Assembly: GCA_051530055.1 (NCBI GenBank)
Contig: CM121342.1
Coordinates: 15,701,480 to 15,765,479 of the forward strand
Length of the DNA: 64,000 bases
Reading direction: 5' to 3'
Origin: Neoechinorhynchus agilis
Lineage: Eukaryota > Animalia > Acanthocephala
Part shown: positions 1 through 30,573 of the stretch, piece after piece
How the letters are laid out: every line of letters begins with the position of its first letter
How positions within the stretch are numbered: position 1 is the first letter of the stretch
The notes under the pieces: generated by a model
Told to the model about the DNA's origin: nothing
The model's input: only the letters and a program-made list of their open reading frames with translations
The model's database searches: none
Translations under genes and position numbers: made by a program

Positions 1-2804
1 ATCTCAAAAGCACGTTCAACTTCTTCAAGCGCTTACTTGGTCATCGATTCAACGACATTGAGCAGTCAGAACTTCCTCATCTTGAATACGAAGCCATCAA
101 AGGCGAAGGAGGCGCAATTTGCGTCAAAGCCGAGTTCGGTAACGAGCGGCGAACATTCTCCATTCCACAAATCCATGCAATGATGCTCGCTAAGCTCACT
201 TCATCTGCCGTTCATGCTTGTGGTCTTAGTGCAAACATCGAAATGACCGATTGCGTCCTCAGTGTCCCCGTCTTTGCTACCGATATCGAAAGAAGAGCTC
301 TTCTCGAATGTACTCGAATCGCCAACATAAACTGTCTACGTGTGCTGCCCGACACCACTGCTGCTGCTCTTTGCTACGGTCTATATCACCAAGATCTTCC
401 TCAACCGAACGAAGAATCAAGACTCGTCGCTTTTGTCGATATCGGATACACGAGTGTGCAGTGCGCTGTAGTGGCGTTCAATCAGGGACGCCTAAAAGTT
501 CTAGGAGTGTCTTATGATGCTAACCTTGGAGGAAGAGATTTCGACCGAGCGCTATCGCAACCTGTCTCATGTATAGGCGATTCGGTAATTATCCCTTATT
601 CATCAATACAATCCGCATCTTCTTTAGTTACTGTTGTTCATACGAACATCTAAGATTTCATATCGACGGATGGCCGCCGATTCTACGCATTTTCGACTTT
701 TCTTTTTTCGCTTTTTGACCGGGAAATGTAATCTAGACCGCATATTCTTTAGTTACTTTTCAAGAGAACATCTAAGATTTCATATCGACGGATGGCCACC
801 GATTCTACGCATTCTGAACTTCTGGCCGAATTCCTTTACTTTTTCGCTATGGGGCGGGTTGCCATAATGTTTCATTTTAAAGACGAAATTCAAAAGGTCA
901 GAGGAGTGGACATTAGCAAAGGCAAGCGGGGCTGGTTGCGCTTAGGACAGCAATGTGAACGAATTAAAAAGATGATGTCCACAATTTCGGCGATTGTTCC
1001 AATTGATGTTGAGTGTCTCGTTGAGGGCGAAGACTACCATTCCCAAATGTGCCGTAGTGACTTTGAAGACCTTTGTGCTAATCTATTTGATCGGATTAAG
1101 AAGACAATGTCCGACGTTCTGACAAATGCTCAAGTCGAGAAAGTCCACTCAGTTGAGATTGTTGGTGGTAGCACTAGACTGCCTCGAGTAAAAACATTGA
1201 TTCGTGAAGTGTTCGGACACGAGGCCAGCACTACTTTGAACGCCGACGAGGCCGTCGCCCGTGGATGCACTCTGATGTGTGCAATCCTTAGTCCGAATTT
1301 CAAGGTACGAGAGTATAAAATCGAAGATTGCCAACCTTATCCAATAACAATCTCATGGAAAGGATCCTGCGAAGATGAGGACACTGAAGTTGAAGTTTTT
1401 AACCATCGAAGCTCAGTACCGATGAGCAAAATGCTTTCCTTCTATAAAAGCGAACCTCTAGTCCTCGATGCTAGATACTCTTATCCAAATGACGTCCCTA
1501 TCGGTGAGAGTAGAATCGGTCTTTTCAGAATCCACGATATCGTTCCAGATTCTAGAGCCTGCTTGCTCTCTCAAATATGAATTTCATTTTATAGCTAAAG
1601 AATTGAGTTGCCACATTTTAATGGGCGATTCGGTCACAGTGGCGATACCACTGACGTCACTGTCGGTTCTTTCGCGCGTTCTCCTCGTTCTTCGATAAGA
1701 TTTCGCTTTCCTCTTCTCTTTTTTCCTTTTCCATTTGAAGACCAAGCATGCTAAAAAGGAAACCCTTCAAAGGTGAAAGTAAAAGTACGAATCAATCGAA
1801 ACGGTATTCTCGAAATAAATCAGGCATTTCTGGTTGAGACAGTAGAGGAGGAAGTTCCAACTTCATCTGAACCGGCCGAGCCTGCTGTTTCGGCTGATGA
1901 TGCGGCTGCTGCTGGTGCACAAAGTGAAGATCAGAATTCTGGTTTACCTCAAACCATTACTGAAGAGGATAAGAAAGTGAAGCAGAAAGTAAAAAATCAT
2001 CCTTTGACTGTAGTGGCTAAACCGACCTTTGAAACTAATCCGGATAATCTTCTTCGATTGATTGAACAAGAGGCGGAGATGCAAGCGATGGATAAACAGC
2101 AAAAGGAGCGAGCTGATGCAAAGAACGCCCTTGAAGAGTACATATACGAAATGCGGGATAAGCTCGGGTCTTCATTGAGTTCGTTTGTCGGTGCCGACGA
2201 CAAGACTCGGTTCAGTCGGCTACTTAACGAATCGGAGAAGTGGCTACTTGACGACGATGAATCCGAAGTGTGTGAAAAGAATGTGTTTGTGAGCAAATTG
2301 AATGTACTTAAATCCATGGGGGATCCAATCAAAAAACGTGCTTATGAGTTCACTCATAAGACGCCGGCGTTTGAGAAACTAGCTAAACAAATTCAGTTGT
2401 TCGAGAAGGCTTATCATTTGTGGTCTACTAAAAAGTCCTACCAGCATATTAGCGAGGATGAGATGAGCAAGGTTATGAAAGCCATTGAGGACAAACGGCG
2501 ATGGCTGTTTGAAAAACAAGCACAGTCCGCCGCGGTTAGTCCAGAAAAAGATTGTACGGTTTTCAACGTGGCAGCGATCAAGCAGCAACAGGCTGATCTT
2601 GAACGAGTATGTAACGGAGTTTTGAACAAACCAGTTCCACCGCCGCCGCCACCACCAAAGAAAAAAGCTGATCCGTCTGAAAAGACAATAAACGATTCTG
2701 CTGGAACAGCCGACAATGGAAAAGGAAATGCGAGTGATGAAGGATTCGCTCAACAGCAGCAGCAGCAACAACAATCAATGGACGATGCAATGGACGTTGA
2801 CTGA
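1..2804 (+). CDS. HSPA4: HSP110/HSPA4-family Hsp70 chaperone (5' partial), interrupted by two non-canonical insertions (555-866, 1555-1755)
   Basis: Motifs FKRLLG, LRVLPDTTAAALCYG, LGGRDFD, VEIVGGSTRLP, TTLNADEAVARGC, KVKVKVRIN, ERADAKNALEEYIYEMRDKL; C-terminal poly-P/poly-Q tail ending MDVD; no other stops or frameshifts in the exons. Confidence 0.93.
555..866 (+). other. Non-canonical intervening sequence 1 (312 nt) in HSP110: TA direct repeat plus terminal inverted repeat
   Basis: TA at 553-554 and 865-866; ends tcgcaacctgtctcat / atggggcgggttgcca pair at 15 of 16 positions (3 G-U); removal gives FDRALMFHFKDE. Confidence 0.85.
1555..1755 (+). other. Non-canonical intervening sequence 2 (about 201 nt) in HSP110 with terminal inverted repeat
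   Basis: Follows TA 1553-1554; agcctgcttgctct pairs with agaccaagcatgct; removal gives IVPDSKGNPSKVKVKVR; exact junction uncertain by a few nt. Confidence 0.75.
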
Positions 2805-3675
2805 ACCGATCGCGTCATTTTTCTCGAAGAGGTTCCTAATAAATCTGACTGCGACTTGAAGAAATCATCAAAGTGACTTACGCGTAATGATGTTAAATCG
2901 GTGTCAATTCCTTTGTATGAAATCTTATACGATTATTACCTCTAAGACTGAACGCGTATGTCCCATGAGCGTATTCAAAGGTAATGATGAAATAACGGAA
3001 GAGCCGTTTGAATGTACTTACGCATTCTGATGATTTTCCTCCTTCTGAACCAACTGACGTTAACATTGAGGTAGGTTTTGGAAGCGAAATCAACATTATT
3101 GGAAAGGGACTGATTTTTTCAGTCCGTCTCCATTGAAATCTATAGAAAAGTTTCCGTTAGCTCGCTTTCTTCGTTTTTCAAGGGATACGAATTTTTGCTA
3201 CAGCTTACTCGATGCCCATGATAGCCATTTTCATTTTCGAAGTTAATATGTTTTCGCAACCGGTGATTATGGGGTGCATAGTGGCGAACGGCCATATAAC
3301 ATCTTAAGGATCCAATATCTTCATCAAAACTAAATACAACCCAGAACAACTGGGGAGTCGGCTTTACACACAAAACGAAATACAATACCTACTTGTAAAT
3401 ACCAACGAAGAAATGGCCGTATTCCATCGCTTTGAAGGCGACTCCATTACAATATCGAGATGTTATGCAAAATGTTTCTAATTACTTGTCTCAAATCCTT
3501 GAAAAATGAGCTCCGCAGAATACGTTCAATCTTCTATTTCGGTGGAACGTTCAAAATACAATTTATCTGCAGTGACGTCTTGCGACAATTTGAAAATTTC
3601 ATTGTCAAACATTAATTAGGAGGATCCTAAAAAGTTATAGAAGAGATTTTGATGCGCAATCTTTGTTTGCGTAGT

Positions 3676-3730
3676 CCGAAGACATCCATTCTCTCGAAGT
3701 CCATTCCCTCGAAATCCATTCCCTCGAAAC
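3676..3730. repeat. Short tandem repeat, about 15-bp unit x3
   Basis: tccattc(t/c)ctcgaa repeated three times. Confidence 0.7.
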
Positions 3731-5280
3731 CTTCCACAAGAGAGCAGCGAGAATATGCGGGACTTCACTCCCTCCCCTCGACGCCCACCTGCACTCCATT
3801 TTCTCCAAAAACGCCCTCCGTCTTCTTCAACCCCCTCCACAATTTTCTTCGTTCATCTCTAAATACTCGTCCCTAGTAAACACCCGCAACCCCAACCTTT
3901 TTCATCCCCCCCTTGCTCGTACCACCCTCTACCAAAAATCTTTCCTAACCCAAGCCCAATCTTTCCTTAACAACCGGAAAACAAGGAAAGACTCCCAATC
4001 GGTCATCTCCTGTACAAAGCCTCCGATCGCACATTAAAACTCCTTCAAAGACAAGTCCCACCTCCCTTGCCTTCAACATCCGTCATCCAGGCACCTTCAG
4101 CAAAGGTAGATGCTGGCTAGTGTATGGATCGTTCTTTTCTTAAATTAATAAAACGTGTTTATATTATATAATGCTCTTATTACCAACAAGCTCGCGTCGG
4201 ACGATACTCCATTTGGCGCAGGCAGCGGACTCCCAAGCAAAATCAGTCGGTTCGATCACTCCTAGACCTAAAAAACGTTAACTGACATGTCGCTTAATGC
4301 CGCATTTTCTTCTCCTATAATTCGACGACTTACTTGGATCTGTGCTACTGGCGGAGAGCGTTTGGCTCGAGCATTCGGCATGAACTCAAATTAGTGCATT
4401 ATCTTGGCACGCTACATGATCTGAAATTGCGGAATGTCGAGAGTAACCAACTTTGATGTAAAAATTTAAGATCATCTCGTTAAACGTTCATCTTTTTAAT
4501 CTAGCCATCAGGTTTTTCTGTTCACAGAATGCCAACGCTTGTCTATGGTGGACACGTTTCTGGCTACCTTTAGTAACAAATTTCTCACGACAATGACGCG
4601 TGTGGGATAGTCTAATCTCTGGCTCAAACTTTTGTCACTACAAGGAAGGCAAATGATGAGGGCCATAAAAATTGAGGGGGCACTGTTTTATCCACTTAGA
4701 TGAGAAACGGATAACTTCCATCGCCTCGTATTCCACATAAAAGGTGGTATACGGTTTCCCCAAAACGTTTTCGACCTTGGCAACATGCAGCCGTCTGTGA
4801 CAAACGCGCTGAGCGCTGAACATGCTGGAGGTTGTTAAAAAAAGCCCAATTTTCCATTTTACCACCTAAACCTTTTAATGCAAGATCGTGCGATATCGTT
4901 CTATATTGCAAATCTAATGATAAAGCATCTACCAACGGGCCTCCACCTGTCTAAAAGCAACAAATGTAGTTGAATTCACAACTATGGTTTTCACCGCACA
5001 GGTCGTGATTGCAGCTTCTGTTGAAGAATGGTCTGATATCGACATAGCTTATGACATCTTAGTTAAACAAAAAAGTAAAAAGGTGCGCTTAGCCATTCTC
5101 GATTTATGAAAGGGCGCTCACGAAATTCACAAATGCATCGATCACAGATGCCATGAGTTTTTAGCTAGGAAGTCAGTCCTTACGGCTACCAGAGAAATTA
5201 TCTCTTTATTTCAGAGTGATACCAAATTTATGAATATAGTGATAGCTTTGAACATATTCCTGACGGTAGATTTTCCATCT

Positions 5281-5420
5281 ACGGACATCTCACTACAGGA
5301 TATTCCCACCCGAACGGACATCCCCAGACCGGGTGTTTCCACGCGAACGGACATCCCCTGACTGGATATTTCCAACCGAACGGACATAACCAGATCGGAT
5401 ATTCCCAACCGAACGAACTT
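5281..5420. repeat. Minisatellite, about 33-bp unit x4
   Basis: Repeated ggatattccca(a/c)ccgaacggacat units. Confidence 0.8.
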
Positions 5421-6955
5421 CCTTCGACCTCACCAAAATCGCAATCCATAGTTTCAATCCAACATTGTTTATCGGTCAAATAACGATTACCCTATCTTCA
5501 TAAAAACAATGCCACAATGAGGACCCAAAATTAAGTGGTTCCAATTTTTTTTAACAAATCAATGAACGTGTTGTTATTACAGTAGAGTACCCAAGGATCT
5601 TCTCATTCACCTATACTGTTTTGTTTGACCACAAGAAATCACATTAAACGCCAACGGTAAGAACTAGTTTATCATCGTTGCATTTTTTTAGTTAATAACT
5701 GGGCTAGACCTTGATCTCAGAAAGACTGAGTTCATTTTAAACTCTCGTTCCACCGTACGGAAACGTAAGATAAGATAATTTTACATGGGATATTACAAGG
5801 TGGATAAGGTAATCATAAAAATAGAAATTCCAAGGCAAATTCAAGCATTAAGAGCGTTATAAAAAATCTCAAGAAGCTTTTAAAAGTGGCACAGGTCACC
5901 TAAAATCAATCTGGAACTCATGCATCTTGTGGGCCTCGTTTTTTGCTCCAGAGACTGTTAACCTGAACACCTCATAGCACTTACCAGGATCATGACACGG
6001 ATTAATTGATAATTTCCGATTGACAGTTGCTGTTTTCCGAAACTAGATATATATTTTTCTTCCAAGTTGTTGCTTTTGCGTGTTAATCCGTTCGCCCGGC
6101 ACTGTGTGCTGATAAGCGGTAGTGACAGGTGCGTGGATTCTAGAGGAAATATAATTGCATGTACGAACAATGATGAAATCAATGGAAAATGTCGTATGGA
6201 ATGCCACACACACATAGCGCTTCTCTTGGTGTTTCTATTGGTGGAAAACTATTTTTGTAAATATAAGCGTCAAATCGCGATGTCGGTATTGCGATTTTCG
6301 TATGCCATCGCATTTTGCTACCGGATAATGTTTGATACTACTAGCGTTTAAAGCTGAAATGGAGATTAACTCTCAAAATCACCAACTTTTGGTTCGCTCT
6401 CTTTTTTTGTAAAGTTTTTACGATATTGCCCTGAATTTAAAACGCAAATACAATCGAGAATCAATCGAAATTTATAATTAGATTTCATAGCTAATCACTG
6501 TTGTCCTTTTTGTTGGATAGTGGTATTGATATCCATTTTCCCTTAAGGGACGCATCTTCACCCATATACACCCCTAAGATTGAGTTACAATTTTTTAAAG
6601 GATGGAAATAGTAGAGCACAATATCATGCTTTAACTAGTCATTATCGGTAAGATTTATGTTGCATGATGATTACCGAATCCGCTTTTTGTGAACGCTACG
6701 TCGGAGGAGAATGATGAAAAGTGCTGAAAATGATGATGTTACAATGGTCGAATTTCGTCAATGATGACCTGGCTCAAGATTCGAGCTGAGGACAGAACGT
6801 TTATGTCGATATCGAATTCGTTAACTATGTCTTTTACAATACTCTTGATAAAACAGTCAGATCTTTTTTGAAATCGAAATAACTTTTGAGTTTTTGATCA
6901 CTGCGATTTAATATTCAAGCGTTAATCGACAAGAATTCCTAAAATTACTTTCCAG

Positions 6956-7780
6956 TTGGCCGTGATGACCTCTGAAACTCGGGGTTACGGTTCCCATGGC
7001 AACGTTAACAAATTAGAAAGATGGAAGGTGTTTTATTGGTTACTCGCAGGAATGAAACGGACTCTCGGCAGTTCGGTTGAGTTTTATTCAGTTAGCGAAA
7101 ACGATTGTGAGGAGCCCGTTAAATCGCTATGTCAAATATTCAAGGCATATTTCCAGACTAAATCCGTACAGCGCTTGTCCATGAGCATGGTAACTTGTGC
7201 ATTTACTTTCATTAACAAGCAAATATTCATTTTAGCTTTTGATATCTTTAACCGGAGTTCTCGTCCACTACATTCCGGATCAGTGGCTCGTTATAACCGA
7301 TGAATTGTCTCGGCGTCCCGCCAACGCAAGTTGTGTATCTACAAATAAGTATCCATTGATTAATTTGATCTTTGCAAAAGACCTAATCCAAGCAATTTGT
7401 TCAACAGTTTCTGTTATTTGCCTGTTAATGATAATGATTTATTTAACCCCTGTCTACAATCGATTCATTTACGTATGCTATCAACAAATGGTCGGTTTTA
7501 GAATACTTTCGCGTAAACAAAACAATTTGAGTTCTAGGTCATTGGCTTGTCGGTTATCGGAATAATAAGTTCATTACTGATTTTTGTAACTCTTCTGGCT
7601 ATCTTGGACAAGATGCGACATCAATTGGGTGAGGATTTCTGTGCATACAACGGAGAGTTATTGTGCCCGCTGCTTATTAAACAAGTCTACAGTCAAAAAT
7701 GCTCTATTTCAGTTTTGGCCACAGTGAGTTTTAAAATCTATATGAGAAACGTCGACGCAGTCCTTAGATTTAATTTTTAA
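6956..7780 (+). CDS. Hypothetical multi-exon membrane protein, possibly claudin/PMP22-like 4TM
   Basis: Three adjacent ORFs joined by plausible GT-AG introns (atg|gtaact..tttag, tac|gtatgc..ctag); several hydrophobic segments; start and end uncertain. Confidence 0.4.
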
Positions 7781-8250
7781 TTGCAAAATTTCCAGTTCAC
7801 ATAAGCCACTAAGAAAATGACATTCTTTTAAGTCTGGCGCTATTTTGTATAATCTGTGATGTATAGTTTCGCTGTGTAAACAATCGCCCTGAATTTGAAA
7901 CGACATCAATGATTTTAATGCATATTTCTTAAAAATTAGTATTGGGATTATGTAACGCTTATCTAAATCCGAATTATCCGTTTAGTTATTATGTTTAGTA
8001 ACAACGATTGCATTTTTCGCCAGTGTTCTGACGCGTTTAGAAACACCCGAATCAACTTCTTGACTCTAAATAAAGTTTCTATCAGTAAATGAGTGTCTTG
8101 CTATATTCCAACAATGACATTTCTTCAATCGCGGCGTCAAACAGAGAAAACAAACGCACTTCATTTACCAAACAAAAGAGCTTGTAGCTGCTATGAAAAC
8201 CGATGATCACGGCTCAGTGATTTTGCTCAGTTTTTGTTTGTCTGCGCGGC

Positions 8251-8505: not shown

Positions 8506-8629
8506 CAACCAATCTGAAACGAAACGTATACACAAAAAAATAACAAAAGACTGTTCGCACATGATTTTGCTTCCAAAAATCACACAGATCTAGTATATAA
8601 AGCGAAAACCGTACGTGTACCATCGAGAC

Positions 8630-9908: not shown

Positions 9909-9981
9909 GCATTCGTAGTGTAGTGGTTATCACGCCTGTTTCACACGCAGGAGGTCCTCGGTTCGATCCCGAGCGAGTGCA
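9909..9981 (+). tRNA. tRNA-Val(CAC)
   Basis: Acceptor stem GCATTCG/CGAGTGC, D arm gtagtgtagtggttatcac, anticodon loop ttCACac, T loop ggttcgatcc. Confidence 0.93.
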
Positions 9982-10293: not shown

Positions 10294-12840
10294 ATGAACG
10301 AATTGCATGTTCATCGGTCACCTAGTCGGCTTTACGTCTCACGGTCATCAGATGAAAATACAAGAGCGTCTTTGTCTGTCCATTGTTCAACTGGGACTGT
10401 CAGTATAAAGTCCCTTCCAAACTCCGACAAGGTGCTGGTTTCATCCGATGTCGAAGGCGTTCTCGGTCTCGCTAAGTTGGTCGTGGATTCGTATTTGGTT
10501 CTGCTAAAACGCAGTGAATTTGTGTGTTTTTTGGCTGAACATTCGATTCGACGGGTCGTCGAGGTCGACTTTGTTCCTCTCACTCAACTGGACCGAAAAG
10601 ATGCGGACGAACCGTACATGGAAATGCTACGAAATAGATTATCATCGAAAAATATGTACTTCTCATGGACTCATGATCTTACCCGGAACTTTCAGTCGAT
10701 CACAAAGCATCCCGATGTGCACCCTTGCAAGTCTCAGTTCCTATGGAACTCATTTATCCTTCGAGAGTTTCAATCGGAAGAGATGAGACCTTTTGTTGTT
10801 CATCTCATCAGTGGACTCGTGGCCCATGATGATATCCAATTATGCCAGCCGTTCGCAACTAGTGAATTCTTTTTCGAATAATAACGAATAATTAGTTCTT
10901 TTAAGCGAAGAAGTTAAAAAGTATTTTCTTTTTCTCTTAGTTTTGCCACTCCACCGGATTCAAAAATTCACTAATTTATTTTCCCGATATTTCACCTCTC
11001 GGATAATTCGGACTTTTCATCTCAATGTTTGCCATTGTTAAACTATTTTATGTGCGAATAAAAGACTTTAACAGCGACAAACCTTAAGAGGAAATGTCAG
11101 AATTATCCGAAAGGTGAAATATCGGGGGAACAAATTAGTGAATTTTTGAATCCGGCCGGGTTGCAAAATCAAGAAAAAGAAAGTATCTTTTCCCCTGACG
11201 ATAATAATCCAATACATAAAAAGTATTTCTCAGCTTGTTTTTTACTAAAATGCTACTTCTAAGAACAGTGTTTCTATTCATTTTCAATTATTATTGAGTA
11301 AGTTCTAGCAATCGAAAACGATAATCTTTTTTAATTGAAAGTGGTGAACTGCTGGATTAGATGGACAAATTGTCAATTATGTCCTGATATCAAGACGATC
11401 ACACCGAAGAACTGGAGCTCGGTACATGTGCCGAGGAATAGACACAAGTGGTCATTGTGCCAACTTTGTCGAAACGGAGCAACTGATCATGTACTCGTCC
11501 ACAGACAAATCCATGCTGTTTTCTCATGTACAGGTCCGAGGATCGATTCCGTTGTTCTGGCGGCAAACTCCGAATCTCATGTATAAACCCATCCCAATCT
11601 TACTGCCTCGAAACCACACTGCTGCATGCCGACTTCATTTCAAAGAATTGGAGAAGCAGTATGGAGATGTGGTAGTTGTGAACCTTATAGACCATAAAGG
11701 ACCCGAGAAAATGTTAGAAAATGGTTACCATTCTATGGCACAGGAATTGTCCATCCCATAAACCAGCATGTCCTTGTTCAGTCTTGAAACGGTACATCTC
11801 TTTATTATAAAAGGTTCAGATCAGTTCACGTCAACACTTGTCTTATTTTCTTTGAACAAACGCCCGAATACAAATCAATTTTTTAGCCTTTTTTCGCAAA
11901 CATTCGGCTTAAATTGAAACCGAAGTTTTCATCACCTAATATTACGGTGCCTAGTTTAAAATTCGAAATTGTCGCATTTCGTTCTAGGAGGTCTACTTTT
12001 GTAGCTCGTAGCGTGTCCACCAGCCCTTTGCTTACGATGTCTAAGAGAGCCAAGTACATGCTGGCTTACATCAGCTTCGATTTTCACGGCCGCACTGGTC
12101 TAAAAGGTGTTGAGCAGTTTGAAGTTCTAATGGCTGAACTTAAATCTTATTTGGAGAGCAACGCGTACTTCCAAATGGACTACGGGGATAAACAAGTTCT
12201 AAAGGAACAAAATGGAGTGGTTCGCACAAATTGCATTGATTCTCTAGACAGGACAAATGTAATTCAATCGAAAATCGCCATGCGTATCCTTGAGCATCAA
12301 TTATCTGATTTGTCGCTAATTGAAAGAAACTTTCCACTTGAAAAACTCCCACAGGTTCATGGAACTTTAGTAAATATATGGGCAGACAATGCGGACACTC
12401 TTAGCGTGGAATATTCGGGCACTCCAGCATTAAAAACGGATTTTACTCGAACTGGAAAGAGAACGCTTCAAGGATTGATGAATGACGCTCGATTCTCGTT
12501 GCAGCGCTACGTCTTGGGGAACTTCTATGACGGATTCAATCAAGACTCGTTTGACCTCTTGCACGGTACTAATGAAATTGCACTGGCCGACTCCTCTTTT
12601 GATTCACTCTTAGAAAGGTTAATCAACAGTAAGCTGATAATTTTTCCGGGAATATCCTTTATATGTTCTCTGATGGTTCTTTTTAACCTCTTGATAGGTG
12701 ACTCGCCGTCACAAAATGAACAAGTTAACATGTTATTTTGGTTCGCTGGTTTCGGAGCAAGCATTTGTGCGACACTCATGTATGGAGATGATATAGTCGA
12801 TCATCCAAGGCTTACTTATAGAAATCCTCCAGATTTCTGA
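10294..12840 (+). CDS. SACM1L: Phosphatidylinositide phosphatase SAC1, interrupted by two non-canonical insertions
   Basis: YFSWTHDLT, LISRRS, RGIDTSGHCANFVETEQ, QVRGSIPLFW, catalytic RTNCIDSLDRTNVIQ, YSGTPALKTDFTRTGKRT, two C-terminal TM helices. Confidence 0.95.
10843..11359 (+). other. Non-canonical intervening sequence 3 (517 nt) in SAC1: TTA direct repeat plus terminal inverted repeat
   Basis: TTA at 10840-42 and 11357-59; ccagccgttcgcaact pairs with agtggtgaactgctgg; removal gives GLVAHDDIQLDGQIVNYVLISRR. Confidence 0.85.
10921..11190. mobile_element. Palindromic MITE (family A), nested in SAC1 intervening sequence 3
   Basis: Long inverted repeat ccggattcaaaaattcactaattt / aaattagtgaatttttgaatccgg; second copy at about 51035-51280. 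Confidence 0.8.
11761..12068 (+). other. Non-canonical intervening sequence 4 (308 nt) in SAC1: TA direct repeat plus terminal inverted repeat
   Basis: TA at 11759-60 and 12067-68; aaccagcatgtccttg / caagtacatgctggct pair at 14 of 16 positions; removal gives ELSIPYISFDFH. Confidence 0.88.
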
Positions 12841-14915: not shown

Positions 14916-17597
14916 TTATACAAGTTTATCATGTGCCATAAACTTTTAGTTGGTTAATTTTAATCTCTTCTGTTTCTGGACCCTTTCCATTTTTACCCAT
15001 CAATGATACCTCGAGAACCCAAATGCCTTCGGGGTTTTCGCCCCAACACCTATTTGTCCCAAATGGATGTTCATGTATTCCTTAGATTAAAAGTTTAGTC
15101 TAAAGGAAAAAATAATTTCGCTGACCTTTATCGCTGTGATCTTCCGGTCTATAATCTAGTAAGACAGATAAGGTTCCTGCTGGAGAGGTGACTGATATTC
15201 GAGTCCCTCCTCTACTATTGGTATTTAGAGTTAAGGTAACAATGAAATGTTCAAGTCTTTCAACTTCACATTCGGCTATTTTAAGAAGCCAGCGGACAAC
15301 TACGACATCTTCATCTGTCCTTTTCAGCCCAAAGTTTGCGAAAAGATTAACGAAATACACAAACCTTCGTTTTTCAGCGGATACAGTTTCAAATTTATTG
15401 CACTCTTTCCTATCGGATACATGGGTCCACTTGGCTCCAAGCTCGATCATTGCATCTGCATCTAATGTGCCGAATCCTATGTAGTCATGAACGTAGTACC
15501 CAGCGCCGTTCACCGTCCATAAATTGTCCGGAGTTAAAGGAACACGGGCAGTTTCCACCACAATATGCATTACGTCTCTATAGGTGAGCTCAGGATTGGA
15601 TTCCAGCAACAATGCAAATATCCCAGCGGCGATCGGAGCCGCTGCTGATGTCCCCTTGAAATCGAACACGCATGTATCAGCACCTCCGGTAGTGCAAACC
15701 CCATAGTGGCGCTTCTAAACATTGTTTCGGACCAACCGTCATTTTGAGCATGAAAATTATAATGGTTTTTTAAAGAAATTTTCGAAAATGAGCTGAGAAA
15801 CAAATCGAAAAAAAGAGTAATCATTCTTGATTCTCTTATAGTTTTTTGCAAAAATGTCAGGGTTCACGCTAAATGCAATTTATATGAGAGAGAGCGAAAC
15901 CGGTGAAAAAATGGGTTCATACTCAAAGCCATTTTACCTTCGTTTTGGAAATTCCCTGGCCCGCGTACGTAGCAGCCAGAATGGATGATCCAGCCTCGTC
16001 GTAACTCTCGTGCCAACCCAATTGATCAACGGATGTTATAGTGAATATATTTGGATTAGAAGTGTAGCCGTCCGCGCCACAATGGTCTCTCGCTCCTCCA
16101 TTACCAGTTGCCCAAACGAAAATGGTACCGCGACCATGCCTTCCCTGAACAAACAATTTGTTATTCAATTCTGAGATCAATACCAACCCTCTTCACGCCG
16201 AACTCAATAGCCTTGGAAGCCATTGCTGTTGGTTTTTCCATTGTTTTCCCGTTATCCACTGGACCCCACGATAAACTCTTTATATCTATCAAAGGATTTA
16301 AATAAGATAGGGCCCGCGATTCCAGGAGAGAATTGACTCTTCCATCGAGCAATCGAAATCCTTTTTGTTATACATTTTTGTTTTAGTTATGCCTGTTAAA
16401 GCAGTAGCAATGCATACCTGCAATTGATGCTCCAAAAGCTACGCCGACCCCACATACTCCATTGTTGGCTTCAGCAGCAGCCACTCCGGCGCACTTGGTA
16501 CCATGACTAATCATAAATGGTTCACATAAGAATAAGGTGAAATCAATGCACCTGTACTTTGCGTTTCTTGTGTCGGGGCTGGGATCATGATCTATATCAT
16601 CAAGGTCATTAAAGTCAAAACTTAGTTCCGGTCTCTATATAAGGACATTACTCCTTCTAAATATGAATCAGGTAGTCTTACATATCTTTCTCGAAGATCC
16701 GGATGTCTATGATCGAGACCATCATCAATAATGCATATAGTTACATTTTTGCCACTTAAACCACGACTCCAGGCCTTTTGAATGTTCATGTAGTCATATC
16801 CATCATGTCCCTTTAAGAAATTGCACATTAGTTGAATAAATTAGTTTCAATAAAAACACTCACCAGTGCCCACTGTTCTTCGTACATCCAGTCATTAAAT
16901 TCAATCCTTGGAAACCGTTCTAATTCATCCCCGAAATGAAATCCGGCAATCTGAACAAGGATAAAAATTAGTTTGTGAAATGTAGTTAAAAATCTGTGAC
17001 CGAATGAATAAAATTGTGTAAGCAAACAGGAAATCGTTTTCTTCTAAACGCCGCTCATCCCTTTACTTTTAAACTTAGTTCAAATCAGTTCAATACGCCA
17101 TGGATGAGCGAGGGTCTTAGTGCGTATAGACGAACATGCACTTAAAATCAATAAAAATGATCCTTTAATGAACTCCGAACTCAATACGCTGCATGTGTAT
17201 ACCAAAGGCCCTTTACGTACCCTTTTCTCGATGAGCGGCTCGTTTTGGATTAGCGATGTCAAAGCTGACCTGGCTAAATGCGTTTCATTGGAACCAAAGA
17301 ACTTCCGAAAATGCCATATATCCAATCCTGCAACCTAAAACGAAGTTTGCCAAACTTGGGTCTTTAAACCGAATCGATCACCCGCCCATAACATGTGAGA
17401 TTATGCCGCGTTCCAAATGTCCTAGCGAACAATTTAGTATCGTAAAGTCCTATGAATTCAACGCCAAAATCCACGTAGTTCGTGTTGTTATTATCGATCT
17501 GTTTATTGGTATAGATTTGTTCGTCTTTTAAAACTGCCTTGTCCAAACCAAGCAGGAGTGTACTGTACGCCATAAAAGATTTAAGTCGAGATTCCAT
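14916..17597 (-). CDS. Kexin/furin-like proprotein convertase (multi-exon)
   Basis: Catalytic D (IIDDG), H (HGTKCAG), oxyanion N (GNGG), S (GTSAAAP); P-domain ([20 protein letters not shown]); signal peptide and propeptide; mostly short GT-AG introns. Confidence 0.92.
17045..17117 (-). other. Non-canonical intervening sequence 5 (73 nt) at the convertase propeptide cleavage site
   Basis: TA at 17045-46 and 17118-19; perfect 9-bp stem cgctcatcc/ggatgagcg; removal gives SIRTRRKR (or RTKRKR with a 1-nt shift); upstream exon phase not fully resolved. Confidence 0.6.
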
Positions 17598-19143: not shown

Positions 19144-19160
19144 CGCCCCCGGGTGGGCTC

Positions 19161-19215
<55 letters not shown>

Positions 19216-21510: not shown

Positions 21511-24500
21511 ATGGCTGCAATGATCGCAATCCTCGCAATCGTCTCAAAACAAACTAACGGATATACACTCAATCCAATCCCGTTTGCTGTTCTGAAACCG
21601 CCTATCGATCATCCAGGTCCTCCTATGTACTTTGGATATGCTCAAACACAAATAATAGATCGCGGAAGTTTAAGGTGCGTACTTTAAGGTAATACAAATC
21701 AGAATGTCGGACGTCTTTTTATAACCAACAAACTGATGATGAACCCGACGAGGTTCGCAGAACATCTTCAATAAAAAAATATTGACCGATATTTTGCTGG
21801 GGTTATTATCCTATAAGAAGCCTTATCACAAAAGAAGAGTTTACAAAGAATTATAGTATTTAAAAACATGCAAACAGCATTAGAAAATTAAAGCGTTTCA
21901 GCGTTCGTTGCTTATATCTTGCAATATTTCTGGCTTAATATATACATTTAAGTCTTTATAAACGATAAAATTCGAAATATGAGGTATATGTTTTTAACAT
22001 TTAATCCGCTATAAATCTTTGGGATCTTTGGTAAATCACTTAAAGGTTTTTCACTCTGATAATGAGATCTCAAAAACGATTAGTAAGAATTTGTCACGGC
22101 AAAGATTGGGAGTAATTGTGCGAGATTTAGGTCACCATTTTCTATCCATTTGGAGAGTGCTTTATCTTGACGAATGTATTAAATATTCGAAAGTGCAACT
22201 TAATTTATTTTGCATCCTTAATTTTTTATGAGTAAAATTTCTGATTTATTGTGCTTGCATTCTATAAAAACATTCGATTTTCGATATTGTGACCTTTGGT
22301 GAAGATAATTCCGGTTAAAAATCATTTTATTTTACTCAAATATTTCGAAAGAGGAAACCTCGCCTTATCAATCATTGTAAATAAATCAAATCGACTAGAT
22401 GTCAATTGGGTTTTTTGAAGATGCAGAATTCGTGCTTACAAGCGACTAAATCGAATAAGCAAAAACCTTTTGAGATATCAATAATTGCTTTATCTATAAG
22501 GGATTGTATTGGACTAATAGACGAAGACTGACCTCACGTAAAATAGCTCATTCGATCTTTTAGGATGCTCATAAGTGCTCCGATAACTCGAACTCTTTAC
22601 GAGTGTTCAGAAACACAATGTGAACCCTTTCGATACCCATTTGAGCACATTTCAGCATTCAGTCTTACTAAAGTTGACAGTAGTGACAGTTGGTTTGGTG
22701 CCAGTATGGAGAGTGTTCGAAATACGAGCGTTGTGGTGAGTAGAACTTTCGTTTTCAGATCTAATCGCTCTTAGGTCTGCGAACCTCGCTTAAAACACGT
22801 TTTCAATCTAAGCCTATCAAACGTTGCTTCAATACGGATCAATGAGGAAGATATGCCTGGGATTTGCCATCTTTTTAACCTCAAAGGTCCCAGCAATCAG
22901 TTGATAAAAACTCCCGGGTTATTCGATTGGAGTGAGTGATTTTTTATACATAGCGTTCGCCTTCATGTGCTTCTATAGATCTCCAGAATTTCAATAAGGA
23001 AGGGTTCGGTCTATTCGGATTCTCAATAGCGTTGTCCCACGTACGTATTCCAATGAACATTCATGATTGAAGATCCTCCTTTTTAGAATCAAAATAATTT
23101 AATTGTTGGTGTACCTGGTTCATACTATTTCCGAGGTATCACTATTTTCTCTCAAATTCGTATTTTATTTGCTTAAAAGGACAAATTTATTCGATTCCTC
23201 TGGGGAAGAGCGATGAAATAGTCTTGAGGAAGAAAAAGTGGGTCAGGGTGCCCGAACGAGAATCTGACGATTATCGAGACGATTGGTGCTATAGAGGATA
23301 TAAGGTGGTCAGTCTTGAACTAACGGATAAACGATTGGAAGGTGAAAATCAAACGAAGGCATTAAGTGGCCTTTAGAGTTCAAGTTCTTAATTTTTTTGT
23401 TAAGACCCCTCCAGAGACAAATGTAGCGGCAAATTTCGCGCCATTTTCTTCGGTTTGGTTTGTATCACTGCGTATCCAAGCGCAGGTTGTATTCGGGTGA
23501 GATATGAAAATGTCAGAAGATCTGCCAAACCGCGATAAAATCAATGATATTTTCTAAATTGCCCTCAGGTGAACTTGATGATAAAGGTGGTGCATTAGGT
23601 GGCTCTTAACTTAAGGATAAAGTAGAGATACTGGCAAAGAAATGTTAAGTAGAAAAGGGTACATGCGACGGTGCTAATTATGATGAATGTATAAAACGAA
23701 ATCCGTTTGGATCGATTTAAACTTACCATCAAATCGTTTACCCCATAAAGAAGTTAGAATCGAGTCTTGGAACCTCCTTAGGGGCTAGAGGGGCTATGCC
23801 AAGAAAATAGGAAATCACATTTCATTTTTGTAAGTAGGAACGGCGGCATCAGTCCCACGTCTTAGCAACTACACCGGCGCAGTTGAAATTTACAACACAT
23901 CCCTTTCATTAATCTCTTCAATCCGCGGTCATCAGGTACTCGCCTTATTTTAATAATGTTAGTTTTTATCGGATATATTCCCATTATATAGGTTGGATCT
24001 TATTTCGGCTATTCTTTACTCAGTGTAGATATCGACGGTGACAGGTAAATAAACACTCACACATAAACAGGTTCACTCACTCTCACTTAGTCTGAGTGAT
24101 TTGGTGATCGGATCCCCATTCTTCACCAATGGAGAAATCTACGATTGCGGTCGGATCGACGTGTACCGCCAGAACACGAACGGAAACTTTATGCATTCAA
24201 CTAAAGTAATCGGTAAGGTTAGCCGCGGGCGATTTGGTTCACATTTGGAATCAATTGGAGACGTTAATGAAGATGGATTTCAAGGTTTGGTAACGCTGTG
24301 AGTAATCAGTTGTCGAATGTGAACGTAGATCTGGCTGTTTCTCAACCATACGGTGAATCGCCATCGGTTCACATTTTCTTCGGATCTTCTGGTGGGCTCG
24401 TTAAGGATACTAAACAGGTTATCAAACGCTATAATCTTGTTTTATGGTTACCTTGGCATTGCAGATTATCAAATCCGACAAAGAATCGTTCGGATATTCG

Positions 24501-27500
24501 TTGAAATCTTTCCAAATGAACAATAATTCCATTCTTAGTGTATCTTCCATCAAATCAGACGTGGTTTATCTTTACCGGTGAGTAAAGTCGAAGTTGTATT
24601 GCTCATATATAAAATTACCAATTCTGAATGTATTTTCCCTTAATTTTTTAGTTGACTTTTGCGATTCATAATTTTTGGGCTAGTATTCAAATGTCTGAAA
24701 CAGAATTCATAATATCCAGGTACTGGTGCAGTTTCTCACAAAATCATTGCTTGTTCATCTAATACTGTTGTAGTACTTCTTTGTAGAACCTTTTTCAAAT
24801 AATAAACAGTATTGCATGCACGTTTTCTCTTTTGTAAAATAATATTTGACTTTTTTTACTTATTGAAACTTGATACACCGCGTTCTTTTTTCTCACTTTA
24901 CCAGAATCGTTATTAACATCTTTTCTTATATAAGAACAAAATCGATATTGAGCATTGAAAAAGGCGTTATATTTACGCCCAACCATATAACTCCTTGGAC
25001 CAAAATGTTCAATATAACCATATGCATGAGATATCGTGGTTCTCGCTTGCCTGAATCGGTTTTATTCCAATCATATGCTCTTCTCGATGCCAATTCAAAG
25101 CTGCCACCGCGTCTCGTCTTCGAATCGAATGAACGATTGGAGAACCTAACAATCTCTCTCCAACGTTCAAAACTCTCGTGCTTCACGTTGCATGCTAAAA
25201 TAAGTACCAGTGGACTCGTCGACAAACTCAGTCCGGTGAAATTCGTATTTAACTATAGTCTGTCGGTCGGTTACGATAAAAATGTCGTACTTAATCAATC
25301 ACAGTCAAATCATTTGGAATTGGAGGTTTGTTTGGTGGATGATGGTTTATGGAATGGAACTTTGATGCTTAGTATTTAGATTCCAATCGAGAAAAGCTGC
25401 GGTGCGGATGGAGTCTGTGTTCCAGATTTAAGTATTGTGATGAAAAGGTATGCCAGCCTCATATATTTAAAGCTTTGGCTTTGTTTTTAAATGAGCAAAG
25501 CATTACACTCATTATGAAGGTTTCGTAAATAGTAGACACCAAATTTTAGATTATCCAATCTGTGCCATTGGGTTCCATTGTATTTATAGTAAAAAAACCC
25601 ATAATATTAATCCTATCGTTCAAAAAGCTCAAACAAATTGCTAAATCATAATGTGATAAAATTATGAATCCAAAGACAAGAGCCATTAGCTATCATTACT
25701 TTGCTTCAATAATAGACCTTCCACGGGTGATGTTTTAATTAAAATAACACTCAATTGCGCTTGCTTATTGCACTACCCTAAACCGGTGAGTTTTTAAAGT
25801 GGTTAGATTAATAAAATGTAATCAGAGTCGCTCTAAAAAAGTAAATCCGATGAGACAGTGATTTCATCACAAATCCCAAAAACGGTGATTTATTTGTAAA
25901 AAGGTCCACAACTTCCACTTTTAATTTTGTACTGTCTATGCTCTTCAATGCGTCTTATTTAGCAATGTAACCCGCTATAAGTACTCTCCGCGGAATCCCT
26001 TGAATGTGTCTATTACAGTAAGAAACCAAGGAGAAGACGCATTTGAATCAAAATGTGTAATTCAAATGCCTCCTTTTATTCACTTGACTCGGATCACATT
26101 CGCAGTGAGTTACTCCTTGTTTTCGATTTGCAAAAACCTTCCTTTTCCTTTGATGTTTTAGGATGAGCTGGTCTGGTGCGAATTTAGCAATTTCGGCGAG
26201 AATAAGACATTGCTTTCCTGCGACTTAGGGAACCCGATGACATCCAATGAAAGCAGACTTCTCTGGATTCAGCTTCAGCCAACAGTACCCGTTGAAACAC
26301 TACATTTCATCGCCAACACATCGAGTAAAAACGCAGAGTTGACCGAAAACAGTATGAGTGATAACATTTTTAAACTCAGTGTTCCTGTTGATATCGATAT
26401 GAAATTGAATCTTAAAGGTCATACTGAGTACGACCAGATCTACAGTGGGCTTAACCGATCACATGAAATCCAAGTGATGGACGATATCGGGAGTGCGGTT
26501 GTGCATGTTTACAAAGCCACTAATGCTGGACCAGTGACCATAAAAAAGATGAAAATGGTCGTAAGATGGCCCAGTAGGACTGCTGACGGACTACATCACC
26601 TTCTTTACTTATCGGAGCCTCCAATTCTATCGAGGCCACAGACGAGAGCTACACGTGACTTTTGTGAAGTCAGTACGGTGTTTCCCACGGTTCCTGCCGT
26701 TAATCCACTCGGGATTATGAAGAAGCGGAGTCCAGAAGAAGAAGTGATAATAATCAAAAGAAGAAGATTTCATACTTTAATTGATTGCCAAATTTTCGAC
26801 TTGGAACCCAATGAAAACGTTCTATTGAATATCCGGTCGAGACTATGGGAACAAACAATTCCTTTGGTGAGTTTCGGAATACTAGGCGATGCTATATGCA
26901 AGATTTACTATTTATAAGAAGCACTAGAAGATTGTAACGGCCCAAAGCATCGACCTACTTTTTATTGACTTCGAATGATTTCTAATGCTGAAATTCTACC
27001 TGACGTCCACAAGTAATGGTCATTGAATTTGATTATCTCCCTGCGCTTTATGAACAATGTAAATCTAATTTAATTCAGTAGAACGATTACAATTACTCTA
27101 AAAAGATGATATTTCTCCGCTTAGAAAGCATCAAGAGATTTATGGTTTTTTGCTTACAAAATTCATATCTTGTTCATCGCATTTTTTGAAATCAAATATG
27201 GTAAGAAATTTGAATATTATTTTGAATTTTGTATTGGTGTCGTTGTTCCTAAAAATTCGCTGATTTGGTGCTTAAAAAGTCTTTATTTTGGCGTGCCAGA
27301 ATTTGCTTAACAACGTAAATTTTTCTTCACGTCTGCCTGAAGCACTATATCCCCTCACTTAAATGAATCGTACAAATAAAATTAGACGCTTTTCAATTCT
27401 CTCCATTTAAGCTATTGTCTCCTGTGGTAAGCATCATGTCGGAATGCGAGATTCGAATTCTGGCAGCCCACACTTTCAATTCAACAACGAATGAGCTTGT

Positions 27501-28857: not shown

Positions 28858-30573
28858 TCATATATCGGCCACTTGACCATTGCCGTTCTCAGAACCTCCA
28901 TTAGTCTCCCTTTGCTGCTTACGCTTTTCGCGTATCATCCTTCTCAACTCTATCGATTTCGATGGAATCGCCGCCGCCGCAGCCGACGACGACGACGAGG
29001 AGGAGGAAATAGCAGGTTTCGCATTTACAACCTTGTCTCGCTGACAATGGCCAACTGTAGTCGAAGATAGCGACGACGTACCAGACGATGAAAGCGTTTC
29101 AATCTCATACGAATCGTTATGCTGTGCCTTTTCCTCCACCGGTTTATCGGCCATTACCTCTTCAATGCAATCAAATGATCGGTTACATGAGTCAATCTGA
29201 GTCTGCAATACGTCCCAGTAACCGGCCAAATCATTTCCCGTAGTAAGTGGCTTGTCTTTTGATGGACACATGTTGTCATAACACAATTTCCTAACACTGA
29301 AAATGCTAAGTCCAATAAATGAACTTAAATACATATGAAAAAGCAATGAAAATACCCCGTATCCCGACCGGTTTCACAGAAACTATAAAAATCAATATAC
29401 TTACCGTTTCACCAGTTATGGTTTGGACAAAAACCTACTTGGATTGACACTGGTGGAATTTTTTTGCCTAGTCTTTTGCGAAACTATACTGAAAAGACAT
29501 CTTAGCAAACGTGTTTTTTTTCAATTGGCAAAATGTGAGGACCCGACGAGGGTCTTTAATAAAAAATTATTCACCCTGGAAAAGAGACTTCTAAACAATA
29601 CCGGATAATTTCTTTAAACCCCGGACACAAGCAACCCCGAAAACTTAGCAATTTCAGCCCGCTAAACTGTTCCATTCTCTTAGCCATTAGAAGTCTCGAC
29701 TGACCAATGGCTGCCTGAATGCTTCCACAAAGTTCCTCCTTATCACCCGAATCGGCCTGGTCGAGTAATATTATCTCATAATTCCTGCATCGCCGGTCTA
29801 ATCTATCGTATGCGGTATCTAACTTCTGCAAATACTCTATTCCGGCGGAGCAATCTCCACCATTTTCGCTACTATTGATGTCCATGACTGTTTCGGGGAC
29901 CGTCGACTCCTGCTGTTTTTGATCGTCAGAAGAAGTCTAAACGAAGATTATGAACAAAAACACTCAAAACAACCACATTCACGCGTTCATTACTCACAAA
30001 GGATGCCTCAACTTGTGGCTGTGTAGATGCCGGCAGCTGCTGCTGTTGTTGTGGAGCTGATGGATACGCTTTTGAGGAGTACCCGTTGACGAGACAAGAA
30101 ATACGCAGGTTTGATTGCTGACGGGCGTTTATTTCCCTTTTTTCGCTATAGTACTTAGCTTTGATCAGTTCGTATTTGCGATCAATGTCTTCATTATTGG
30201 CCTTCAATTCTGGTTTTGATGAAGGCTCCATTGGTTGCAGCGGCGGCGGCGACAGTTGTGCTGTGACGACCGAGAGTTTACTTGGACGACGCCAAAAATG
30301 AGGCTTTTTTGCCGCTTTATCAGGTGAAGACGAACCACTGAGACTTTGTCCGCCGGTTCTACGGGCGATCTTCTGTTTCAACACGTCGAGGAGACTAGTA
30401 CTCTTTTGTAGCTTAATCGGAGGAACCGTAGCCGAGACTGTTGTTACTGGTGCACGTAGAGTCTGAGACCTCGATGAAGAAGAGTATTTATGGTCGACCG
30501 GATCCTGTTGAAGATTCGTCGTCGAAGACGAAGCCTTCTGACGATGAGAATTTCGTCGAAACAGAAAACTCAT
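28858..30573 (-). CDS. DLGAP/GKAP (GH1) domain protein, interrupted by a non-canonical insertion
   Basis: GSIQAAIGQSRLLMAKRMEQF...LCYDNM...TGNDLAGYWDVLQTQI...IRRMIREK-like segment match the GKAP homology domain. Confidence 0.82.
29293..29663 (-). other. Non-canonical intervening sequence 6 (371 nt) in the DLGAP gene: TTAG direct repeat plus terminal inverted repeat
   Basis: ctgaaattgctaagt / acttagcattttcag pair at 14 of 15 positions; removal gives EQFRKLCYDNM. Confidence 0.83.

Follow-up and report, generated by a model that had tools for sequence, protein, structure and literature searches.

What are the insertions that break the reading frames of conserved genes in Neoechinorhynchus agilis, an eoacanthocephalan (thorny-headed worm; Rotifera/Syndermata), and how might the genes be read in their presence? 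In a stretch of 64,000 nucleotides of its genome (hereafter the window), six insertions (ins1 to ins6) with terminal inverted repeats (TIRs) had been predicted to split conserved coding exons of genes for HSP110, the phosphoinositide phosphatase SAC1, a furin-like proprotein convertase and a DLGAP/GKAP-family protein, and to represent a new gene-interruption system. All six inserts were found where they had been predicted. Five of them, ins1 and ins2 in HSP110, ins3 and ins4 in SAC1 and ins6 in DLGAP, split exons and each brings in-frame stops or a frameshift, whereas ins5 proved to lie inside GT-AG intron 2 of the furin-like gene. Judging from the restored genes, some form of insert removal is very likely, and removal from RNA is likely. 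We place about half of our confidence in the reading that the inserts are cut from pre-mRNA as transposon-derived introns, some of them with non-canonical boundaries. The claim of a new system was overstated, as the same architecture is found in Amoebophrya (PMC7789003) and transposon-derived introns in Fritillaria (PMC13326754); the N. agilis inserts are a further instance of something already described rather than a new kind.

The HSP110 locus of the window lies at ~15.70 Mb on chromosome CM121342.1 (16.38 Mb) of assembly GCA_051530055.1. This 46.2-Mb assembly of three chromosomes was produced with MaSuRCA from Oxford Nanopore Technologies and Illumina reads, with ~50 pooled worms of both sexes as the DNA source, and annotation by BRAKER with RNA-seq evidence gave 13,655 genes (PMC12690905). 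The genome record is JBMGUZ000000000; the RNA-seq data, from 74 poly-A libraries, are deposited under PRJNA1223661, and a Trinity assembly of transcripts is kept at Zenodo (10.5281/zenodo.17199078). We analysed ~74 kb in total, consisting of the window and 10 kb of upstream flank (L002). The coordinates of the main features are collected in Table 1, in which MITE stands for miniature inverted-repeat transposable element.

Table 1. Genes, inserts and junction sequences (window coordinates)
Feature	Position	Strand	Description or sequence
HSP110 (HSPA4/HSPH1-like) coding sequence	3..2804	+	First 59 codons upstream of window; interrupted only by ins1 and ins2
ins1, 312-nt TIR element	555..866	+	HSP110, between FDRAL and MFHFKDE; in-frame stops
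ins2, 201-nt TIR element	1555..1755	+	HSP110, between IVPDS and (K)GNPSKVKV; TIR GCCTGCTTGCTC / GCATGCTTGGTC (10/12)
SAC1 phosphoinositide phosphatase coding sequence	10294..12840	+	573 aa without ins3 and ins4; no canonical intron
ins3, 517-nt TIR element	10843..11359	+	SAC1, between DDIQL and DGQIV; ATTA duplication
Nested foldback (palindromic) MITE inside ins3, 275 nt	10917..11191		Arms ~81% identical
ins4, 308-nt TIR element	11761..12068	+	SAC1, splits Tyr codon of SIP-Y-ISFDFH; TA duplication
Furin-like proprotein convertase	14929..17597	-	Canonical GT-AG introns: seven of 43-57 nt, one of 223 nt and one of 270 nt (nine in all); S8 and P domains intact
ins5, 73-nt TA-flanked hairpin	17045..17117	-	Inside canonical intron 2 (17220-16951); no exon split
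DLGAP/GKAP-family gene	28858..30573	-	One canonical 61-nt intron (29997-29937) and ins6
ins6, 371-nt TIR element	29293..29663	-	GH1/GKAP domain, between MEQF and RKLC; TTAG duplication in sense; TIR 14/15
Predicted precise junction 36-mer, ins1			GATTTCGACCGAGCGCTA/ATGTTTCATTTTAAAGAC
Predicted precise junction 36-mer, ins2			ATATCGTTCCAGATTCTA/AAGGAAACCCTTCAAAGG
Predicted precise junction 36-mer, ins3			CATGATGATATCCAATTA/GATGGACAAATTGTCAAT
Predicted precise junction 36-mer, ins4			GGAATTGTCCATCCCATA/CATCAGCTTCGATTTTCA
Predicted precise junction 36-mer, ins6			AAGAGAATGGAACAGTTT/AGGAAATTGTGTTATGAC
Predicted precise junctions, short forms			GAGCGCTA/ATGTTTCA, GATTCTA/AAGGAAAC, CCAATTA/GATGGACA, CCCATA/CATCAGCT, ACAGTTT/AGGAAATT
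Rival canonical junction 36-mers, ins1			TATCGCAACCTGTCTCAT/ACGAAATTCAAAAGGTCA and TCATGTATAGGCGATTCG/TTACTTTTCAAGAGAACA
Rival canonical junction 36-mer, ins2			CAAATGACGTCCCTATCG/GAAACCCTTCAAAGGTGA
Rival canonical junction 36-mer, ins3			ATGATGATATCCAATTAT/ATGGACAAATTGTCAATT
Rival canonical junction 36-mer, ins4			ATGGCACAGGAATTGTCC/ATCAGCTTCGATTTTCAC
Rival canonical junction 36-mer, ins6			GGCTAAGAGAATGGAACA/TGTTAGGAAATTGTGTTA
Shifted or cryptic canonical junctions, short forms (examples)			CTGTCTCAT/ACGAAATT, CCAATTAT/ATGGACAA, GGAACA/TGTTAGGA

Five inserts interrupt otherwise intact genes

Concerning HSP110, whose top search matches are rotifer proteins, the coding sequence becomes an uninterrupted open reading frame (ORF) when ins1 and ins2 are left out. 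ins1 is flanked by a TA duplication (553-554 and 865-866), holds an internal 87-nt tandem duplication, and on its removal the junction GGRDFDRAL/MFHFKDE aligns without a gap to 7 HSP110 homologs (alignment A1). ins2 is flanked by CTA (1552-1554 and 1751-1753), the two copies being 2 nt out of register with the reading frame. Removal of the element together with one CTA copy (199 nt) results in a frameshift, and a gapless alignment needs the removal of exactly 201 nt, after which the junction IVPDSK/GNPSKVKVKV is also gapless against the 7 homologs (A1). A pyrimidine tract is present on the sense strand of ins2 (~1700-1735). The deposited HSP110 model contains 48 extra residues that result from reading through parts of ins1 and skips 17 conserved residues at ins2.

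The SAC1 ORF is likewise intact without ins3 and ins4. The ins3 junction DDIQL/DGQIV is gapless against SAC1 homologs (alignment A2). ins4, whose TIR matches at 16/18 positions when counted with the TA, opens with an in-frame TAA and splits the conserved Tyr of I-x-Y-x-S-FDFH; the one gap near its junction (A2) comprises three residues and sits in a variable loop, two residues to the upstream side. In the public annotation SAC1 is divided into two models (window 10294-11761 and 12037-12840, corresponding to 20469-21936 and 22212-22979 of L002). The first is deposited as a 322-aa N-terminal fragment (KAL7673545.1, 'hypothetical protein ACOME3_008401'), which gains 6 residues at ins3 and ends at the TAA opening ins4, and the catalytic C-terminal half is annotated as a separate gene with its ATG inside ins4. 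As for DLGAP, leaving out ins6 and the 61-nt GT-AG intron gives an intact protein of 427 aa, and the MEQF/RKLC junction is gapless against YQFRELC of the solved GH1 domain of DLGAP1 (PDB 4R0Y) and KQFEGL of DLGAP5.

The surrounding exons had been described as free of other lesions, and this was borne out: in ~5.8 kb of coding sequence we found no lesion besides the five inserts, and all family-invariant residues are kept. The Pfam domains Syja_N, GKAP and Peptidase_S8 each form one continuous stretch in the insert-free proteins, across the insert junctions. Intact paralogs, which the original prediction had named as counter-evidence, were looked for; homolog searches of the protein collection brought up neither another HSP110 nor another SAC1 from N. 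agilis, and the runners-up were 64% (a UniParc entry whose origin is unknown) and 38% identical. As the assembly is a consensus of ~100 haplotypes (~50 worms), the inserts are not rare alleles. Removal is probable because conserved genes that appear to be sole-copy and are otherwise intact carry the inserts as the consensus allele of 50 worms, and it is reasonable to suppose, as was done earlier, that the animal has to neutralise them.

Paired ends and duplications identify the inserts as transposon insertions

The insert junctions were set independently by protein homology, and the 36-nt ends at these junctions were tested as duplexes against 4000 random intervals of the same length. The duplex energies of ins1 to ins6 were, in order, -28.6, -20.6, -27.5, -22.5, -23.2 and -27.6 kcal/mol, values reached by 0.07%, 1.0%, 0.07%, 0.4%, 0.3% and 0.07% of the random intervals (p = 0.0007-0.01); TA-bounded control intervals gave similar percentages. 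In minimum free energy (MFE) folds of the full-length elements the termini pair together in 6/6 inserts, with 18-25 terminal pairs. The TIRs of 9-16 bp that had been claimed are thus real, although imperfect, with matches from 10/12 to 14/15 and, in ins5, an exact core of 9 nt (~11/16 overall). Direct repeats of the predicted TA type are present in five of the six inserts: TA (ins1), ATTA (ins3), TA (ins4), TA (ins5) and, in sense, TTAG (ins6). As TA is palindromic, the terminal helix continues through it. Removal of the element and one repeat restores the frame in ins1, ins3, ins4 and ins6, but not in ins2, where it leads to the frameshift described above, nor in ins5, where a stop arises.

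A TIR alone would be unconvincing because the window contains many chance inverted pairs; a generic inverted-repeat scan with at least 10 matches gave 413 pairs in the window against ~200 in shuffled sequence, a ~2-fold excess, and ~0.1% of ORF-restoring TA pairs reached 11/14 (offsets allowed). The duplex test, however, was made at junctions that homology had set beforehand. A combined scan of the window alone, for TA...TA pairs with a TIR of at least 11/14 and a deletion that fuses two ORFs of at least 45 codons, recovered ins1, ins3, ins4 and ins6. A further 24 matches were chance-like, and the two that were checked against homology would both delete conserved sequence. Two TIR pairs in the integrin gene (23328-23740 and 25130-25622) restored no ORF. 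The ABCC and integrin-alpha genes were reconstructed in part, and inserts in short exons there could escape detection.

The inserts (73-517 nt) are too small to encode a transposase, and no transposase domain, including domesticated ones, was found in spare ORFs of the window. Their origin as non-autonomous, MITE-type DNA-transposon insertions is well supported by the TIRs, the TA/TTA duplications, the small size and the lack of coding capacity, and also by the foldback nested in ins3, the tandem duplication in ins1, the occurrence of ins5 in an ordinary intron and the abundance of palindromes in the window. The elements look old, with diverged TIRs, a duplication that is lost or out of register in ins2 and a nested MITE whose arms have diverged. 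As had been noted, the inverted repeats are mutually unrelated; BLAST detected no kinship among the six inserts apart from an exact 11-mer, GGCGATTCGGT, common to the sense strands of ins1 (577-586) and ins2 (1625-1634). This sharing is only marginally above chance, and wider similarity is absent. A copy of the 11-mer with one mismatch occurs in furin intron 1 (17368-17377).

In a multi-copy test within the window, the foldback nested in ins3 alone was found twice, its relative (51032-51271) occupying non-coding DNA upstream of a CPSF6-like gene. The two belong to one foldback MITE family of ~230-280 nt with ends like GGGGAAAAGATACTTTC. Many further long palindromes or foldbacks, near-perfect and with arms of 26-40+ nt and 35-38/40 matches, lie in intergenic or intronic DNA (31663-31872, 45259-45373, 47491-47685, 51283-51578, 53637-53821, 56613-57119 and 58325-58776), the sixth of these enclosing nested foldbacks at 56642-57018 and 56715-56945. 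Two candidate TA-flanked elements in non-coding or intronic DNA, 13971-14110 and 23328-23740, have common TAAACGA...TCGTTTA termini, both followed by CCCC, and may constitute a small family of MITEs; their termini resemble one end of ins5 (…GGCGTTTA).

Ordinary introns of the same region

The furin-like gene is a local reference for ordinary splicing in N. agilis. Its intron 2, of 270 nt, follows EPLIEKR and reads GTACGT...TTGTTCAG (17220->16951, ending GTTCAG). ins5 lies within it, and removal of ins5 together with one TA brings in a stop (cac tag). Because a simple search for short GT-AG introns gave too much noise to derive a splice-site matrix, we used canonical introns mapped by hand in the furin-like, DLGAP, Rab27-like, SPOUT1 and MRPL13 genes (n=14). 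All 14 are GT-AG; 11/14 are 42-61 nt long and 3/14 are 223-438 nt. Their 5' sites are weakly conserved (GTGATC, GTACGT, GTGAGT, GTAAGA, GTTGGT and others), and their 3' ends are A/T-rich and end in AG. By reading, terminal pairing is absent in the 14 introns. The N. agilis spliceosome thus looks ordinary. The exon-splitting elements, 201-517 nt long and with strong terminal helices, are unlike the local canonical introns in size and composition, and are a distinct minority class beside the short GT-AG introns. In the furin-like gene, the 45-nt canonical intron 16507-16551 (-; GTGCAT...GATTAG) is in frame and stop-free; unspliced, it would read as a 15-aa insertion beside the catalytic His region and is easily mis-annotated.

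Probable removal of the inserts from RNA

In the reading that we favour, elements landed at TA sites, five of them within coding exons of HSP110, SAC1 and DLGAP. The two arms would pair into a terminal helix through the palindromic TA and bring the ends of the exons close to each other; cutting out the element with one copy of the duplication (201 nt for ins2) would recreate the ancestral reading frame. The machinery would most likely be the spliceosome acting on non-consensus ends, as in Fritillaria; ins2 and ins4 at least would need non-GT-AG boundaries, while for ins3, ins6 and ins1 GC/GT-AG pairs displaced by +1, -4 and +16 nt, respectively, would be an alternative. Complete benchmarking universal single-copy orthologs (BUSCOs) of N. 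agilis amount to 54.9% in the transcriptome vs 47.1% in the genome for Metazoa, and 71.0 vs 58.4% for Eukaryota (PMC12690905). In Pomphorhynchus laevis, complete and fragmented BUSCOs together stand at 75.5 in the transcriptome vs 61% in the genome. Such a gap would be expected where standard gene finders see the loci as more damaged than the mRNAs really are.

A number of points weigh against this reading. Insert removal is a prediction from genomic sequence. A protein restored by deletion of an element and one duplication is expected of any transposon insertion, and so proves insertion rather than precise excision. ins2 breaks the rule of one duplication copy, the BUSCO gap possibly has other causes, and copies of the element families could be counted in ~74 kb only. 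Apart from TA, the elements share no end motif, so that no splice signal can be named. A full enumeration of GT-AG, GC-AG and AT-AC pairs near each insert that leave the frame intact and free of stops gave between 43 and 165 options per element. ins3 can be read as a GC...AG intron (10844-11360) at +1/+1 (TTAT/GCCAGC...GGATTAG/AT), with a single D->Y change at a variable position. ins6 offers GT...AG at -4/-4 (ACA/GTTTAG...CATTTTCAG/T), altering two residues, the conserved QF to HV, and ins1 offers GT...AG at +16/+16 with the acceptor TTTTAAAG, replacing MFHFK (~5 residues). In all three cases frame and length are kept.

The prediction that the inserts lack GT-AG ends accordingly holds at the duplication-defined boundaries, where GT/GC...AG or AT...AC ends occur in 0/5 elements, but not for ins3, ins6 and ins1 once these shifts are allowed; the description 'non-GT-AG' is secure for ins2 and ins4 only. 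In these two, every canonical option costs at least 3-6 conserved residues, and the BRAKER choice for ins2 (1504-1758) drops 17 residues, an invariant G, I and P among them. ins4 as a U12-type intron (ATCCCA...TTAC) was rejected on account of a poor 5' end and branch-site distance and the loss of the conserved IPY. Within the ambiguity given by the duplications, every element can start or end with TA, and no other dinucleotide pair is shared.

Alternative explanations

The main rival is cryptic canonical splicing, in which the ordinary spliceosome would use GT/GC-AG sites near or inside the inserts to yield in-frame, slightly altered proteins, without any unusual intron class. SAC1 would carry D->Y and lose 3-6 residues, DLGAP would carry QF->HV, and HSP110 would have MFHFK replaced by SQPVSH and lose 6-17 residues. 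We regard this as unlikely, though it deserves serious consideration: besides the equal-offset pairs of ins3, ins6 (with a good TTTTCAG acceptor) and ins1, the local 5' splice sites are so weakly conserved that nearly any GT could serve, and BRAKER did build in-frame canonical models for HSP110 and ins3. Such pairs within ±16 nt, however, were found in 3/5 elements against ~1 expected by chance on our own estimate, which is suggestive but not significant. The best choices for ins2 and ins4 delete the invariant or near-invariant GNPS/ESRIG...P or IPY residues, the QF that DLGAP would lose is a pair that DLGAP1 and DLGAP5 both keep, and it is hard to credit that five lesions of this kind were fixed within 30 kb in three genes that are conserved and apparently sole-copy. 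We consider it very unlikely that the inserts are simply retained, as recent knock-out alleles or young pseudogenes with broken transcripts in a gene-shedding parasite. About 40-45% of metazoan BUSCOs are missing in N. agilis (PMC12690905), which has been read as gene loss, and the annotated proteins are truncated or aberrant. Against retention stand the five insertions without any other stop or frameshift and with every family-invariant residue kept, the old appearance of the elements, their presence in a consensus of ~100 haplotypes and the failure of searches to return a second HSP110 or SAC1. HSP110 and SAC1 are, moreover, essential housekeeping genes. Given the length of the inserts (201-517 nt), we rejected ribosomal bypassing.

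That excision in acanthocephalans reads the terminal hairpin and not splice dinucleotides, through either a helix-guided RNA endonuclease and a ligase or precise somatic DNA excision, seems rather improbable; if true, it would be without precedent for the housekeeping genes of animals, and a sizeable part of the 'massive gene loss' would be an annotation artefact. Taken by itself, the RNA version, with an endonuclease reading the terminal helix and an RNA ligase joining the exons, has a very low probability. The cutter could be a tRNA-intron-type endonuclease, or an RNase III-like enzyme that staggers its cuts by 2 nt at the TA:TA pairs. The helix through the palindromic TA is the sole feature shared by the elements, which have no common splice-site motif, and a cut after each TA would, in the geometry we envisage, free a hairpin with a 2-nt 3' overhang. 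To our knowledge, no mRNA-wide non-spliceosomal excision pathway exists in animals. The predicted terminal helices are continuous or interrupted by 1x1 mismatches and contain no bulge-helix-bulge motif of the pattern 3-nt bulge / 4-bp helix / 3-nt bulge, the junction does not sit at a constant place relative to the end of the helix (ins2 is off by 2 nt), and the U2 spliceosome handles the comparable Fritillaria introns (PMC13326754). With Rfam, the whole window at the gathering threshold gave two tRNAs only and no match to self-splicing group I or group II introns. A permissive scan of 400-12200 (ins1-ins4) added a sub-threshold microRNA match on both strands of the nested foldback, a palindrome artefact, and a weak bacterial small RNA match over ins3 at chance level (E = 0.13). 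Programmed DNA elimination similar to that of the internal eliminated sequences (IESs) of Paramecium, with germline inserts precisely excised at TA from somatic nuclei, is a weak option to which we assign a very low probability. The elements are TA-bounded with short TIRs, 4/5 exon-splitters (ins1, ins3, ins4 and ins6) are restored with one TA left behind, the assembled DNA came from whole worms, and acanthocephalan somatic tissues are syncytial with giant nuclei. However, TA-to-TA excision of ins2 (199 nt) shifts the HSP110 frame, a TAYAG-like end consensus is absent, the window contains no transposase or domesticated transposase, and literature searches found no DNA elimination reported in Acanthocephala. 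Animal germ cells also transcribe, and would presumably need HSP110 and SAC1 from the same DNA.

Comparison with known systems

The closest counterparts of the putative transposon-derived introns in N. agilis are the introner elements of the parasitic dinoflagellate Amoebophrya (Farhat et al. 2021), which have inverted repeats of 8-20 nt, direct repeats of 3-5 nt over the exon/intron boundaries, a predicted hairpin that joins the exon ends, variable non-canonical termini and splicing validated by RNA-seq (PMC7789003). The N. agilis inserts resemble them in the inverted repeats, the direct repeats at the borders, the exon-joining hairpin, the MITE-like nature without transposase and the occurrence in a parasite. 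They differ in that Amoebophrya is a protist whose elements fall into recognisable repeated families and account for much of the intron total, whereas N. agilis is an animal in which short GT-AG introns dominate; the repeats of N. agilis are 2-4 nt long and always include TA, and their splicing is a prediction. In the larvacean Fritillaria borealis (Henriet et al. 2019; Soo et al. 2026), less than 10% of introns are GT-AG, AG/AC and AG/AT dominate, a YAY triplet is found at both borders and removal is by the U2 spliceosome (PMC13326754). Likewise, N. agilis is an animal with intron-poor genes in which inserts attributed to MITEs have duplication-like repeats at their borders; in contrast to Fritillaria, the repeated unit is TA, TTA or TTAG and most introns are still canonical. 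With all boundary options within the duplications considered, an AG/AC or AG/AT reading is impossible for 5/5 elements, and YAY fits one end of one element.

Their small size, short TIRs, TA or TTA duplications, hairpin potential and lack of transposase liken the inserts to Stowaway (Tc1/mariner, TA) and Tourist (PIF/Harbinger, TTA/TAA) MITEs, but the TIRs of the six N. agilis elements are unrelated. MITEs are normally purged from coding exons. In Paramecium, IESs are short, TA-bounded, Tc1/mariner-derived sequences that are excised from DNA by PiggyMac in the somatic nucleus, leaving one TA. The N. agilis inserts are similarly short, TA-bounded and interrupt coding sequence, but ins2 fails the TA rule and the TAYAGYNR end consensus is absent from the ten ends (TATCGC, TATGGC, TAGAGC, TAGCAT, TATGCC, TAATCC, TAAACC, TAAGCC, TAGCGG and TAACAC). 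Introners with canonical sites in Micromonas and Aureococcus resemble DNA transposons, generate introns as they insert, and have repeats of constant length, GT-AG ends, TIRs and duplications (PMC7789003, PMC11282704). As in these, the duplication may supply a splice site, since ins3 (TTA/G) and ins6 (TTAG) could give an AG acceptor; in contrast to them, the N. agilis ends are heterogeneous and two elements are without a usable canonical pair. The nonconventional introns of euglenids have variable non-GT-AG borders, with base pairing near the ends that joins the splice sites (PMC12501133, PMC11170887). They lack the target-site duplication and the terminal, transposon-like TIR of the N. agilis inserts and follow the sequence rules of their own protist lineage. 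Our literature searches turned up no unusual introns from acanthocephalans or other syndermatans, and the word 'intron' does not occur in the genome papers of N. agilis and P. laevis.

Implications for acanthocephalan genes

If removal is confirmed, the N. agilis lineage would be the second animal lineage, and a protostome one, with hairpin-ended transposon relics as non-GT-AG introns. Unlike in Fritillaria, these would coexist with normal short canonical introns in a 46-Mb genome, providing a clean system to study the recognition of structure-defined introns and intron birth by transposon insertion. Five elements in ~74 kb would, by rough extrapolation, correspond to possibly a few thousand affected genes genome-wide. 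The public annotation mis-models the HSP110, SAC1 and DLGAP genes, and the claimed absence of 40-45% of metazoan BUSCOs in acanthocephalans may be inflated and partly artefactual.

Other features of the window and its flank

The L002 flank contains two called genes, of which that for phosphomevalonate kinase (PMVK) was examined. The annotated gene (L002 4630-6364) appears to begin in a retroelement-like segment (…RMLRWISSFTLKDHVRNEEIRNRYGV…), and its conserved exons lie at ~5588-6361, with three short introns between them that look canonical. In the window, degenerate remnants of non-long-terminal-repeat retrotransposons with frameshifted reverse-transcriptase frames are present at 33500-38500 and 60030-60800. 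Their closest database relatives are environmental sequences of ~50% identity and none is annotated in N. agilis; a query with the window's long interspersed nuclear element (LINE) reverse transcriptase returned no N. agilis proteins. In the ABCC transporter region (41990-42110), a long T-run is directly followed by a long A-run with perfect complementarity over 23 + 23 nt, a hairpin that may be an assembly-prone site. The two tRNA genes are tRNA-Val(CAC) at 9909-9981 (+), 313 nt 5' of the SAC1 start codon, and tRNA-Asn(GTT) at 19144-19217 (-), between the furin-like and integrin-alpha genes.

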